This document shows, one piece after another, positions 20,001 through 63,200 of a DNA stretch of 64,000 nt. The notes under the pieces were generated by a model. The model saw nothing but the letters and a program-made list of their open reading frames with translations, did not search any database and was not told where the DNA came from. Each line of letters begins with the position of its first letter. Position 1 is the stretch's first letter. Source of the stretch: Laetmonice hystrix (taxonomy: Eukaryota); contig OZ249441.1 in the NCBI GenBank assembly GCA_965235115.1, positions 6,634,001 to 6,698,000 on the forward strand. Direction: 5' to 3'. A program made the position numbers and the translations under genes.

Positions 20001-23000
20001 CTACCGTCTGGTTTCGTGGTGATTTACCTGATTCCTACCCTCTGGTTTCGTGGTGATTTACCTGATTCCTACCCTGGCAGGTTTCGTGGTGATTTACCTG
20101 ATTCCTACCCTCTGGTTTCGTGGTGATTTACCTGATTCCTACCCTCTGGTTTCGTGGTGATTTACCTGATTCCTACCCTGGCAGGTTTCGTGGTGATTTA
20201 CCTGATTCCTACCCTCTGGTTTCGTGGTGATTTACCTGATTCCTACCGTCTGGTTTCGTGGTGATTTACCTGATTCCTACCCTGGCAGGTTTCGTGGTGA
20301 TTTACCTGATTCCTACCCTCTGGTTTCGTGGTGATTTACCTGATTCCTACCCTGGCAGGTTTCGTGGTGATTTACCTGATTCCTACCCTCTAGTTTCGTG
20401 GTGATTTACCTGATTCCTACCCTCTGGTTTCGTGGTGATTTACCTGATTCCTACCCTGCGGTTTCGTGGTGATTTACCTGATTCCTACCCTGGCAGGTTT
20501 CGTGGTGATTTACCCGATTCCTACCCTCTGGTTTCGTGGTGATATACCATGAAGGATGACCCAATGACAACTGTTGTTTCAGTCCTGGGGTGTGTGGCGT
20601 TCGTCGTGAGTTACTTCCAGCTGGTTTGTTGGAACCTGTCGGCCTACAACCAGACCCAGAGGGTGAGAACCCAACTGTTCCAGGCAATTCTCCGACAGGA
20701 CATTGGTTGGTTCGACACGCACGAGGTGGGAGAACTGAACACCCGCCTGGCAGAGTAAGTAGGCTAGTTCCTCTAACAGGAGCCCAGTCTGGGATGGGGG
20801 GGGGGGGGGGTAAGGGGGTCCCTTTAGACCTGATTTCTTTCTCGTTAAAAACACACATACCTTTCTGTCCCTAATTTAGACAGATACTAATGAGGTACGA
20901 TATTAAAAGGTTCCATCCATCCTTCTACCATTGTACTGATGCGGGTTCTGCTACTGGTACTACTGGTGGATTATACTAACTGATACTTGTATTTATAGTA
21001 GCAACGTTCAGTCATTTTCAGGGGGGTTATCATTGTAACATCTTGCTGATAAAATAAGCAAGCCAGATGTAATCCAATACATATAATACTGGACTAGAAG
21101 TCGACCTGACATGTGTAAAACTGACCCTTACAGCAAAGAAAGTTCGAACTGTTCCTGAATGCATGTGTGACATCAGTTTTCTTTCATTCCGCAGCGATGT
21201 GACTAAAATCAAGGAAGGTTTGGGAGAGAAGTTGGGACTTGTGTTCCAGAACGTGTGCGCGTTCCTGGCAGGTTTTGTGGTGGGGTTTATCCACGGATGG
21301 AAGCTGACCCTAGTCATCCTGGCTGTCAGCCCTCTCCTGGCCCTCTCAGCTGGACTCATTGCTAAGGTAACGAAACGAGACTGGCCATTCGGGGAAGGTG
21401 GCCAACCGCTGGGGCGCGTTTCACAACCATCGCTTAAATTGCATCGGTGTTAACGACACGAGAAGCTAACGCTACGTTGTGAGACGCGCCCCAGGCCCCA
21501 TCTTACGTCCGATATTTAAAACCGGTCAATAATGTCCAGAGGTAACCTCTTCACATTGTTAAAAATTACAGATCTAAGGAAGATAACACCAAGATAGCAT
21601 TGCTATGCCGTGGCGTTCAAAGGGAAATGAAACTATATACATGTACATGAATCAGCTCAGCCATACACGACATGAGCATTACTTTCTGCCCACAGATCGG
21701 GTCATCGTTTACGCTGAAGGAGCTGAAGGCGTATGCCCAGGCCGGGGCGGTGGCCGAGGAGGTTCTGGGGGCCGTCCGCACAGTGGTGGCCTTCAATGGC
21801 GAGCTCAAGGAGTGCGAACGGTGGGTCCCCTGGGCGGATCAAGGAGGCAGACCCCCCTTTTCTGGACCACGTTTTATTTTTCATATTTTTCTCATATGTG
21901 TCCGTTCATACCCTTTTTAGAGCTTTTGGGGGAAGACTTTCCCTCCATCTGGCTCCGCTCCTGGCGAATGTTAGGCCAAAAGAAAAGGAAGGGTTATGTA
22001 ATAGTGCTAGTATTATTTTCTATCCGCTGTATTTCGTTTTCACATGTCTCCCCGTATTTCTGGGTCGGTATTTTGTCACTGTAAATATTCCATCCGGATA
22101 CAGGTACAACAAGAGACTGGTAGACGCCATGAGTTTCGGGATCCGGAAGGGGGTTGCGAACGGGGGTGGAATCGGTATGGTATTCCTGGTACTCTTCTGT
22201 TCGTACGCCCTGGCATTCTGGTACGGATCACAGCTAGTCCAGGAGGATTCTGCTTACACCGCCGGCACACTCCTGACGGTCAGTAACCATCGTAACCCTA
22301 AACAAGCAATAACAGAGTCCATACAGTCCAGACTCGCCCACCGCCTGAAAGGGGCTATGTGGAGACTACCCACATCATGAACCACCTCGTGGATACTTAG
22401 AGAACTAAATGAAACGTGTGTTGTCTGGATATTTGGTACAGGGACCCCCCCCCCCCACTCCCCCCTCAGCATTGCAGTTTTATAAGTTTCACCAGTCAAA
22501 GTCTACCTCAAGGCAAGATATGTATAGTCAAAAAATGACACACAGAAATCGATGAAAAACGATGCATCTTCGTAGTCACTAGAGGGCGCCACCTAGACTA
22601 TGGGGACAAGTGAACGGTTTAGGAAAGTCTGTACGTTGCCTCGGTAACATCAGTTTTTTCTTACAAACTTTCCTGGTTGCCCCCCTAATTGTTAACCTTT
22701 CTATTTTTGTATTTCCTAATTCAGGTGTTCTTCTCCGTACTGATTGGCGCGTTCTCGATCGGGAACGCAGCCCCTAACCTCCAGTTTTTCGCCGACGCCC
22801 GGGGAGCTGCGTACGCTTTGTTTCAAATCATTGACACTGTATGTATCAATGCCTGTCCTTTCTGACATCATTGACACTGTATGTATGAATGCCTGTCCTT
22901 TCTGACATCATTGACACTGTATGTATGAATGCCTGTCCTTTCTGACATCATTGCCACTGTATGTATCTATGCCTGTCCTTTCTGACATCATTGACACTGT

Positions 23001-60200: not shown

Positions 60201-63200
60201 ATTGAGAATACACTGAGATCACCTGGTAGGGGTGACCACGTCCCAGTACATGTTCATTGAGAATACATTGAGATCACCTGGTAGGGGTGGCCACGTCCCA
60301 GTGAATGTTCACTGAGAATACATTGAGATCACCTGGTAGGGGTGGCCACGTCCCCCTGTATGTTCATTGAGAATACACTGAGATCACCTGGTAGGGGTGG
60401 CCACGTCCCAGTGCATGTTCATTGAGAATACATTGGGATCACCTGGTAGGGGTGGCCACGTCCCAGTACATGTTCAGTGAGAATACATTGAGATCACCTG
60501 GTAGGGGTGGCCACGTCCCAGTACATGTTCAGTGAGAATACATTGAGATCACCTGGTAGGGGTGGCCACGTCCCAGTGCATGTTCATTGAGAATACATTG
60601 AGATTACCTGGTAGGGGTGGCCACGTCCCAGTGCATGTTCCGCCAGGCGGCCTCATACTGAAACTCGTCTAGTGCGTGTTTATCGGCGCCACCTAGTGTC
60701 AAACCCTGGAGGTATTTGTCCAGCACGTGGCCCATCCCCAACTTCTGCATGGCCTGCCAAATCAAAGACAATAGTCTCAAACAATGGAGAGCAGATGTCA
60801 TAACTTATTGATTAGATGTTTAAGAACTTCTAAAACTTCTTATGATACAATGTCTACAATGCTGGACCACATTCACCAAGGCTATTATTCTGAAGTAATG
60901 AAATCAAATTTGTTCTAGTGTTTTTTAATTCAAATAAAAAATAAACAAGTGACATGGAGAGTGTCTGTGAGACGGAAGTGTTTACCTGAAGAAGACCCAG
61001 CTGGGCAGACGGTGGCGCGGGCTGGGAGAGTTGAAGGTCATAAGACCCGACCGCCTTCGCCCACTCCCCTTCATGTTCATAGGTCTGAATCCTGCAAAGT
61101 TCAAACAGACTTGTTAATCTTATACCGCGGGTTGTGAGATGTCTGACAGCCCAACTTCCAAACGGGACTTATGATTAGTAATTACAATGTACAACGTATA
61201 CAAGTATTTGAAGGCTAGCTGACCTGGCCTTGGTTTCAGGCAATCGTCCGGCGCCACAGCCGTAGATGGAGTCGGGGTCGCCGATCGCTCGGTATGCTTC
61301 CAACATGAGGAGTTGGAGGTTGATGTTCGCAGGGTTTGGGATGCTGGTTAGACTATCGAGCTGACTCAGCGTGTTCAGTCGACCATCATTCTGACTGCCC
61401 TGACTGCCGACCCTGGGCTCTCCAACACCTTCGTCTCTGTACACAATCAATGGTGCTATTAGCAGGTTATAAATATTCTACGAGACCTCTACTGATGGTT
61501 GCGATAACGGAAAAACTTCTCCCTGCAACATCTTATACACATTAGGAAAGAGAAGAAAGTCAGAGAAATGACAACCCAATAACAATGGAAGAACACTGCC
61601 CTTTCTAACCCTGTGACACCCCCTGAGGTAGACACCTTTCCTAACCCTGTGACACCCCCTGAGGTAGACACCTTTTCTAACCCTGTGACACCCCCTGAGG
61701 TACACACCCTTCCTAACCCTGTGACACCCCCTGAGGTAGACACCTTTTCTAACCCTGTGACACCCCCTCAGGTAGACACCTTTTCTGTGACACCCCCTGA
61801 GGTAGACACCTTTCCTAACCCTGTGACACCCCCTGAGGTAGACACCTTTTCTAACCCTGTGACACCCCCTGAGGTAGACACCTTTTCTAACCCTGTGACA
61901 CCCCCTGAGGTAGACACCCTTCCTAACCCTGTGACACCCCCTGAGGTAGACACCTTTTCTAACCCTGTGACACCCCCTCAGGTAGACACCTTTTCTAACC
62001 CTGTGACACCCCCTGAGGTAGACACCCTTCCTAACCCTGTGACACCCCCTGAGGTACACACCCTTCCTAACCCTGTGACACCCCCTGAGGTACACACCCT
62101 TCCTAACCCTGTGACACCCCCTGAGGCAGACACCCTTCCTAACCCTGTGACACCCCCTGAGGCAGACACCCTTCCTAACCCTGTGACACCCCCTGAGGCA
62201 GACACCCTTCCTAACCCTGTGACACCCCCTGAGGTACACACCCTTCCTAACCCTGTGACACCCCCTGAGGTACACACCCTTCCTAACCCTGTGACACCCC
62301 CTGAGGTAGACACCTTTCCCAACCCTGTGACAGCATCAATGTCACACCCCCTGAGGTAGACACCTTTCCTAACCCTGTGACACCCCCTGAGGTAGACACC
62401 TTTTCTAACCCTGAGACACCCCCTGAGGTAGACACCTTTTCTAACCCTGTGACACCCCCTGAGGTAGACACCTTTTCTAACCCTGAGACACCCCCTGAGG
62501 TAGACACCTTTTCTAACCCTGTGACACCCCCTGAGGTAGACACCTTTTCTAACCCTGAGACACCCCCTGAGGTAGACACCTTTTCTAACCCTGAGACACC
62601 CCCTGAGGTAGACACCCTTCCTAACCCTGTGACACCCCTGAGGTACACACCCTTCCTAACCCTGTGACAGTATCAATGTGACACCCCCTGAGACACAAGG
62701 TAGTCTGAACTGCACTTTTAAGGACATTTTACAATGACAACAGCACTGACTGACCTCTGTATGTTGCACCAGATCTCCGAGTAAAGGAGAGTGGTGAAGT
62801 AGGCTGAGCAACTCGAGGCGGCCTTAGCCACCTGGAGGAAGTCAAGGTCAAGCCAGAGGTTCTTGTCCCAGGCTGTCACCCTCTCACGTCTGTTCCAACA
62901 ACAACGGCAGCTTATATTATATCATATCTAGTGGGTGGTACATACAAACCAACCATAACATTAAACAATACTAGATTTACATATTACATATTACATAGAT
63001 TTACATATTTACATATTGTAGACTGATCCTCTGAGTATCCACATGTCCTCATCATAAAACAAGAGATCGCTCAGAGAGAGGCTGTGACTTGGCTTACCCC
63101 TGTGACGGACGGTCCTGGTGGCGCAGGTACTGTACCACATTCAGCATGACACGCAGGGATACTCGGTTACCATAGACACTGGGGCCACAGCTACCTGATG

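Follow-up and report, generated by a model that had tools for sequence, protein, structure and literature searches.

The window analyzed here, 64,000 nt of Laetmonice hystrix DNA (contig OZ249441.1, positions 6634001-6698000, of the assembly GCA_965235115.1, which has 627 Mb in 35 contigs), holds an ABCB1-type full ABC transporter gene and the 3' part of an ATM gene. In both genes, tandem arrays lie across exon boundaries and stop codons, and their units combine an exon edge with the adjoining splice site or stop. Such junction-copy arrays are 'mirage' minisatellites, a class that has already been described, so that the window offers a rich new example and no new mechanism. We consider it probable (roughly 0.6) that these mirages are by-products of a very active, general formation of minisatellites seen through a selective filter, and that they do not result from mutation targeted to junctions.

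Junction-copy arrays in the ABCB1-like and ATM genes

Gene models were built from open frames, GT and AG splice sites (with one GC/AG pair) and phase continuity. The transporter gene occupies positions 17019-42479 of the forward strand in 27 coding exons separated by 26 introns, and its model is free of stops over 1338 amino acids. The ATM gene occupies positions 48142-63516 of the reverse strand, where its last 23 exons, including the FAT, kinase and FATC regions, are found; the gene runs past the end of the window. The two genes are convergent, and 5.7 kb separates their stop codons. Single exons of the transporter match the Pfam families ABC_membrane and ABC_tran, and single exons of ATM match PI3_PI4_kinase and FATC. 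The best matches among solved structures are human ABCB1/MDR1 for the transporter and human ATM (residues 2930-2977) for ATM. An earlier note on this DNA, made from the letters of the window, had arrived at exon numbers identical to those of our models.

Tandem Repeats Finder (TRF) returned 71 rows for the whole window. Among the 16 independent intronic arrays in both genes that have a period of at least 20, 11 straddle a splice junction and three are interior to their introns; of the other two, one has its start at intron position +2 and one stops 34 nt short of an acceptor. Straddling arrays are thereby found at 11 of the 96 junctions of these two adjacent genes. The unit of each straddling array consists of 5-33 nt of exon edge together with an intact GT or AG; donor arrays begin in the exon and extend into the intron, and acceptor arrays finish in the exon. 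Two further arrays lie at the 3' ends of the genes, where the unit is made of the last 13 (ABCB1) or 19 (ATM) codons plus the stop. The arrays run head-to-tail in 2 to 28 copies with 85-97% matches as scored by TRF, and this range of copy numbers agrees with the earlier note's remark that all stages of growth are present. The same note had described 13 arrays of this construction, and TRF places all of them at the coordinates that follow, each with its exon edge and adjoining splice site or stop. It had also proposed that they arose independently, which holds because the units derive from different local sequences, each being built from its own junction.

In ABCB1, on the forward strand, the exon 8 donor mirage (22827-23767) has about 23 copies of a 40-bp unit that carries the last 12 exon nt followed by GTATGT, and all 22 of its additional splice sites, or decoys, keep the GT. 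The exon 11 acceptor mirage (24880-26339) has 28 copies of a 52-bp unit, which is composed of 41 intron nt ending in CCTCCAG and the first 11 exon nt, and all of its decoys keep the AG. Exon 13 bears a mirage at its acceptor (35835-36643; 12 copies of 67 bp with 8 exon nt) and another at its donor (36771-36853; 2.7 copies of a 31-bp unit consisting of 27 exon nt plus GTAA). The exon 22 acceptor is spanned by a duplication (39536-39789; two copies of 126 bp with 11 exon nt). The stop array (42438-43603) contains 25 copies of a 47-bp unit made of the last 13 codons, TAG and 5 nt.

In ATM, on the reverse strand, the stop array (45422-48203) contains about 25 copies of a 109-bp unit, with a 218-bp higher-order period, which holds the last 19 codons, TGA and about 49 nt. 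The donor of the kinase exon ending in IHIDLG is duplicated (49969-50281; 2.2 copies of 143 bp with 21 exon nt), and the acceptor of the VIPLSQRS exon carries a mirage with a 91-bp unit (51758-52896; higher-order periods of 182 and 273 bp, 21 exon nt). The RRQLVK donor mirage (53287-53538) has about 7 copies of a 34-bp unit with 14 exon nt plus GTAAG; its true first copy is 9 nt shorter owing to an indel, and the TRF row, 53287-53515, ends before that copy. The KGARS acceptor mirage (54884-55550) has 12.6 copies of 53 bp with 10 exon nt, and the DVATPT donor mirage (59926-60640) has 13 copies of 55 bp with 33 exon nt.

The GSVRK donor mirage (56580-58376, reverse strand) has a 41-bp unit with about 5 exon nt plus GTAGGAG, in 4 and 9 copies on the two sides of an insert, and with 5 exon nt per unit it is the weakest case of a junction copy. 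Its two parts, 56580-56961 and 58215-58376, are a single donor array broken by a high-copy element and not two independent arrays, because they share the 41-bp unit, lie in one intron (ATM intron 9) and keep the repeat register across the insert, which is flanked by a 5-bp AGATA duplication. In each of the three read sets, the k-mer depth over the 1253-bp insert itself (56962-58214) is 5,000-20,000, compared with a single-copy level of about 50 nearby, so that hundreds of genomic copies are implied. No terminal inverted repeat was found in this element.

In the phase-continuous models, the authentic junction is the terminal copy of the array, the one proximal to the exon, and the ABCB1 model is free of stops only when exon-proximal sites are used. 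The arrays that do not straddle a junction include one of 37 copies of 34 bp on the forward strand (19261-20548), which stops 34 nt short of the ABCB1 exon 4 acceptor, and one of 3.9 copies of 21 bp on the reverse strand (48461-48541), which starts at intron position +2 and abuts the donor of the penultimate ATM exon. The earlier note had counted two arrays as abutting a junction. The purely intronic arrays, all on the reverse strand, are one of 11 copies of 38 bp with its acceptor 65 nt away (48817-49233), one of 5 copies of 93 bp (50907-51453) and a pair that shares one 36-bp unit in about 30 copies (61600-62669). These are three independent arrays where about four had been proposed, since 56580-56961 belongs to the VRK donor array.

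The earlier note knew of no named mechanism for this pattern. Mirage minisatellites are, however, on record in the amphioxus Adh3, troponin C, globin (BflGb6/9) and PGBD5 genes, at either the 5' or the 3' exon boundary, with units of 10-160 bp that are present in anything from a few to many copies and keep AG or GT in them (PMC3087553, PMC3902484). Splicing of these genes was normal by reverse transcription PCR (RT-PCR), instability of array length was shown, and the authors called the mechanism of origin unclear (PMC3087553, PMC3902484). The arrays of the window resemble them in having a boundary-spanning unit, at either boundary, with AG or GT kept and with the real junction as the terminal copy. 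They differ in being far denser (11 of 96 junctions in two adjacent genes) and in reaching 28 copies, and also in that both stop codons carry such arrays; normal splicing, which was demonstrated in amphioxus, is suggested here by the intact frame.

A variable number of tandem repeats (VNTR) in intron 7 (IVS7) of human F7 has an identical construction: the first element of the 37-bp repeat spans the boundary of exon 7 and IVS7 (PMC1557585). In 50 minigene constructs, the identical downstream pseudo-donors proved functional yet silent, and the most upstream donor was chosen by 5'-3' scanning (PMC1557585). An authentic donor followed by identical pseudo-donors is also the anatomy of the donor arrays described here. 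In contrast, the F7 repeat is a single locus in an array-poor genome, and 5'-3' scanning leaves acceptor arrays unexplained. In unit size, in identity between units (88-98% within one array), in higher-order periods and in abundance, the arrays of the window equal ordinary minisatellites, including the non-junction arrays of this genome; what sets them apart is that their units combine a functional signal with coding sequence, from a few nt up to about 60.

Frequency of straddling arrays in the window and in unselected genes

We compared the number of straddling arrays with a geometric null model in which placements that straddle a junction by at least 5 nt are tolerated if a splice signal is retained, and in which fully exonic placements are excluded. 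For this model, arrays were collapsed to one unit, and the long terminal repeat (LTR) element of ABCB1 intron 11 and the high-copy insert were removed. The 48 collapsed introns have a median length of 282 nt with an interquartile range of 170-359. The probability of straddling ranges from 0.04 to 0.76 per array for units of 21-143 nt, and 24-33% of tolerated placements straddle a junction. Because the collapsed introns are this short, 3.9-5.2 straddlers would be expected among the 16 arrays of the window in any case; 11 are observed (P 3e-5 to 1.4e-3). These P values are post hoc, the window having been flagged for its junction-array pattern among more than 500 windows of the genome.

As a control, we took two ABCB paralogs on the same contig and nine CCT chaperonin genes, chosen regardless of repeats, with 52 resolved introns. 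The exons of the paralogs were mapped by tblastn with the ABCB1 protein of the window and their splice sites were refined; the CCT genes were delimited by exon-wise Pfam matches. The control count covers the ABC regions and the CCT loci, and matches to myosin, cullin and adaptin exons were left out of it. Five control arrays straddle a junction, seven are interior and three are unclassifiable. The straddlers are a 46-bp acceptor array in 19 copies and a 68-bp donor array in 11 copies in one ABCB paralog, a 70-bp donor duplication (two copies) in the other paralog, and two donor arrays, of 70 bp in 17 copies and of 31 bp in 5 copies, in one CCT gene. The 70-bp duplication is independent of, and at the same junction (LVMNQ/GTAAAC, with the slash at the exon end) as, the 31-bp exon 13 donor array of the window; it lies in the contig region 13005001-13045000, at positions 13746-13885 of the joined region.

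Among the 12 classified control arrays, the five straddlers compare with 3.2-3.8 expected (P 0.16-0.29), and when the three ambiguous arrays are set as interior, five of 15 compare with 4.0-4.7 (P 0.35-0.54). The control excess is therefore 1.1-1.6-fold and not significant. Interior arrays are equally common in the two samples (7 per 52 control introns and 5 per 48 window introns), whereas the control has three to four times fewer straddlers for each resolved junction (3/104 versus 11/96). These counts indicate that mirages are general in the genome and that the window is an unusually rich sample of them; they allow a junction excess of anything from none to about 2.5-fold. The earlier note had judged the pattern far more frequent than random placement would give. 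An excess of about 2.5-fold is indeed present in the window, but the judgment was overstated, given the share of placements that straddle by geometry alone, the selection of the window and the lack of a significant excess in the control.

Repeats are abundant throughout. Arrays with a period of at least 15 make up 30% of the window (32% when the span of the two genes is taken alone), and arrays make up 7-25% of five unrelated 40-kb regions of the same genome, so that a tenth to a third of the sampled DNA is minisatellite. The data do not call for mutation that targets junctions; much of the frequency follows from short introns in an array-rich genome.

Probable selective filtering and its alternatives

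In the explanation that we favor, tandem duplications of 20-300 bp would arise everywhere and would expand by slippage or unequal exchange. Wholly exonic duplications would destroy the protein and presumably be removed by selection, while intronic ones would be neutral. Those that straddle a junction or a stop would be tolerated because, after a tandem duplication, an undamaged copy of the boundary is still present beside the real exon. By computation, units of 30-140 nt in introns of about 170-360 nt would then place a quarter to a third of the tolerated duplications across a junction. Decoys would be tolerated if the exon-proximal site is the one used, as it is in human F7 intron 7 and, by RT-PCR, in amphioxus. 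If a decoy were used, a frame shift or stop would follow and nonsense-mediated decay would clear the product. The residual excess of the window would be partly an effect of its choice, and part of it may reflect a modest real bias of unknown cause.

The state of the decoys is consistent with such a filter. We stepped through 91 decoys in 9 of the 11 straddling arrays, and all of them keep GT or AG with a local score the same as that of the true site; stepping failed in the 34-bp and 91-bp ATM arrays, where the decoys look intact by eye. Nearly every use of a decoy would be harmless, as translation would meet a premature stop within the inserted repeat or shortly beyond it; the exception is a three-unit insertion in the 41-bp array. 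Splicing probably proceeds at the exon-proximal site, to judge by the intact frame and by the amphioxus and F7 precedents (PMC3087553, PMC1557585). In one control array, the 46-bp acceptor mirage of an ABCB paralog (contig region 5495001-5535000, reverse-strand positions 15508-16363 of the joined region), the decoys end in GAG and the true site in CAG; this is the sole case seen of a weaker decoy.

Unit lengths point in the same direction. A multiple of 3 is found in one of the 16 straddling arrays of window and control, compared with 5 of 12 to 7 of 15 interior arrays (binomial P=0.014; Fisher P=0.015-0.057), and the sole straddler of this kind, the 126-bp unit of ABCB1 exon 22, carries an in-frame stop. 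Such a rarity of in-frame straddlers, seen here in a small sample, would be expected if the filter operated through reading frame and nonsense-mediated decay. The earlier note had itself offered a selective filter that tolerates decoy splice sites as one of its possibilities, and the geometry, the intact decoys and the frame data all accord with it.

Several points weigh against the selective filter as a full account. The window excess over the geometric null is nominally strong (about 2.5-fold, P about 1e-4), and the excess persists when window and control are pooled (16 of 31 arrays compared with 8.3 expected, P=1e-3). The control sample is small enough to be compatible with a 2-fold bias. 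Two of the three intergenic arrays lie on stop codons, for which chance would account in about 0.5% of cases by a rough estimate from TRF coordinates and about 1.9 kb of collapsed space. Finally, the multiple-of-3 signal is based on 16 arrays.

These same numbers speak for a doubtful alternative, namely that mutation is genuinely concentrated at the borders of coding sequence. Exon and coding edges would then be hotspots of tandem duplication at about 2-3 times the neutral expectation. For example, a repair or recombination tract that runs from a conserved exon into a diverged, hyper-polymorphic intron or untranslated region (UTR) might mis-reanneal at the border and duplicate it. Nonsense-mediated decay would subsequently influence which arrays survive, and the scarcity of multiples of 3 among straddling units would thereby be explained. 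The window excess (P 3e-5 to 1e-3) and the pooled count favor such hotspots, as does the fact that both stops are hit, which fits a boundary of conservation, and that further arrays abut junctions within 1-34 nt. Variation is also dense: the three read sets and the assembly differ at more than 35 sites in about 3 kb of unique sequence (window positions 53100-59000), as expected of a polymorphic genome. Such variants are not confined to introns, however, but are also present in exons; moreover, the control genes show no significant excess, and it was this very pattern that led to the choice of the window. We also looked within arrays for polarity of turnover and saw no consistent gradient of identity towards the exon. 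The variant put forward in the earlier note, in which the damage is coupled to splicing or R-loops or the slippage is templated by complementary DNA (cDNA), is disfavored further because stop arrays exist and the mRNA continues past the stop; a stop codon is a boundary of coding constraint and not one of splicing.

Base composition and shared motifs were considered as sources of the arrays. The GC content is 54% in exons and 41% in unique intron sequence, and GC-driven seeding of the junction excess was rejected, as no GC enrichment over the flanks is seen in the 62 non-straddling unit families (+0.02, P=0.15-0.39). Among the 76 unit families of the window and five 40-kb control regions, TGACAC/GTGTCA, a motif picked by eye, occurs in 12 compared with 3.3 expected (P=1.8e-4), and GAACCA/TGGTTC occurs in 11 compared with 2.4 expected. 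These figures are suggestive, but they do not establish that the units share a core motif or derive from mobile elements, since neither excess survives correction for all hexamers (1734 in the case of TGACAC).

It is very improbable that the arrays are functional, that is, that stacks of decoys or repeats of the C-terminus were selected to tune splicing, to sequester U1 or U2AF or to regulate use of the 3' end. The perfect conservation of decoys within arrays and the avoidance of multiples of 3 would be expected of such a role, but identity within arrays is equally expected from concerted evolution of any young minisatellite, and interior arrays without splice sites are just as homogeneous. 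In addition, the paralogs lack arrays at the same junctions, the units are unrelated in sequence, copy number varies from 2 to 28, and the reported mirages leave splicing unaltered (PMC3087553).

We give hardly any credence to the possibility that the arrays are relics of intron birth. In the Rogers model, introns are born by tandem duplication of exon sequence that contains AGGT, and the arrays would be what remains. The units do hold exon sequence and AG/GT-type signals, and such an origin has been proposed for some globin introns in work on mirages (PMC3087553); exon-containing tandem duplication yields extra splice signals in both situations. The model, however, creates a new intron, whereas here a pre-existing intron is merely lengthened. 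The mirage-bearing ABCB1 introns compared lie after amino acid 420, before amino acid 500, before amino acid 625 and after amino acid 678. Both ABCB paralogs, with about 50-70% protein identity, have introns at those four protein positions with zero-residue gaps and without the arrays of the window. Given that these positions are common to array-free paralogs and that the units within one array are 88-98% identical, the arrays are later than the introns, recent additions to old introns. The Rogers model is contradicted in this way at the four ABCB1 junctions that were compared, out of five (all but the exon 22 acceptor). Moreover, the array-bearing introns each keep about 90-400 nt of unique sequence and do not consist solely of duplicated units.

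An assembly artefact, by which mis-assembled long reads would have produced the arrays or their copy numbers, is scarcely credible: one mirage was indeed mis-assembled in a draft genome, according to the globin paper (PMC3087553), and our unitigs break inside the arrays without spanning them, which leaves copy numbers resting on the assembly, but at four arrays the transition from exon to array is recovered in short-read unitigs from the same sample, depth is raised inside arrays, and identical architecture recurs at unrelated loci.

Implications and other features of the window

With as many as 28 identical, intact splice sites in tandem, the arrays form natural series that would test how the spliceosome chooses among equals. 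A first-donor rule is known from human F7; the acceptor arrays imply a last-acceptor rule, for which there is no comparable explanation. In a genome rich in repeats, mirages also provide one route from short introns to introns of kilobase length. Should the modest junction excess and the avoidance of in-frame units hold across the genome, mutation bias and selective filtering at exon edges could be weighed in quantitative terms, which is rarely possible. If edge hotspots were real, mirages would be a process that can be quantified across the genome and that links repair, splice-site choice and intron growth, and no mere curiosity of amphioxus. Decoy exon edges are at the same time a trap for gene prediction, and translated arrays have been filed as proteins in public databases. 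When an exon of the ATM FAT region was searched against the public protein collection, three fragments were returned; one of them, a 646-aa 'protein' with a weak match to the exon, comes from an unrelated contig of metagenome type (10001-11941), where it translates a tandem DNA repeat in 12 copies.

Within ABCB1 intron 11, an LTR retroelement occupies positions 26537-35212. Its two 913-bp LTRs (26537-27449 and 34300-35212) are 100% identical, its ends read TG...CA and it is flanked by a 4-bp GTAG duplication. The insertion lies 4 nt downstream of the exon 11 donor, the duplicated GTAG being the first four bases of the intron. An open frame of 1009 aa is found within the element on the reverse strand (31254-34280).

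Two introns depart from the usual pattern. ABCB1 intron 18 (38451-38612) is apparently a GC-AG intron (CAG/GCAAGT, with the slash at the exon end), and no GT donor keeps the frame there. In ATM intron 7 (59075-59398), no frame-keeping GT-AG pair was found between the exon ending in EEAGKQIL and the exon beginning (E)GVIHWCPSD, which may reflect a non-canonical site, a micro-exon or a sequence error; this phase-inconsistent junction is free of any array.

The largest array of the window (14216-17011; 46.6 copies of 60 bp) lies just 5' of the first ATG (17019) of the ABCB1 model and ends 2 nt upstream of a putative acceptor, TTTCAG/G, so that either an intron of the 5' UTR or a promoter is possible at this place. 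Between the two stops, about 70% of the intergenic 5.7 kb (42477-48141) is tandem array, and about 1.9 kb is left after the arrays are collapsed. The locus at 53100-59000 is highly polymorphic, and the read sets differ from the assembly there by small indels of 7, 12 and 4 bp as well. Elsewhere on the contig, both ABCB paralogs are flanked by one satellite with a period of about 840 bp (13025500-13044500 and 5495500-5499800), each unit of which carries the 18-bp sub-repeat AAACAGTACAGTGAGGCC.

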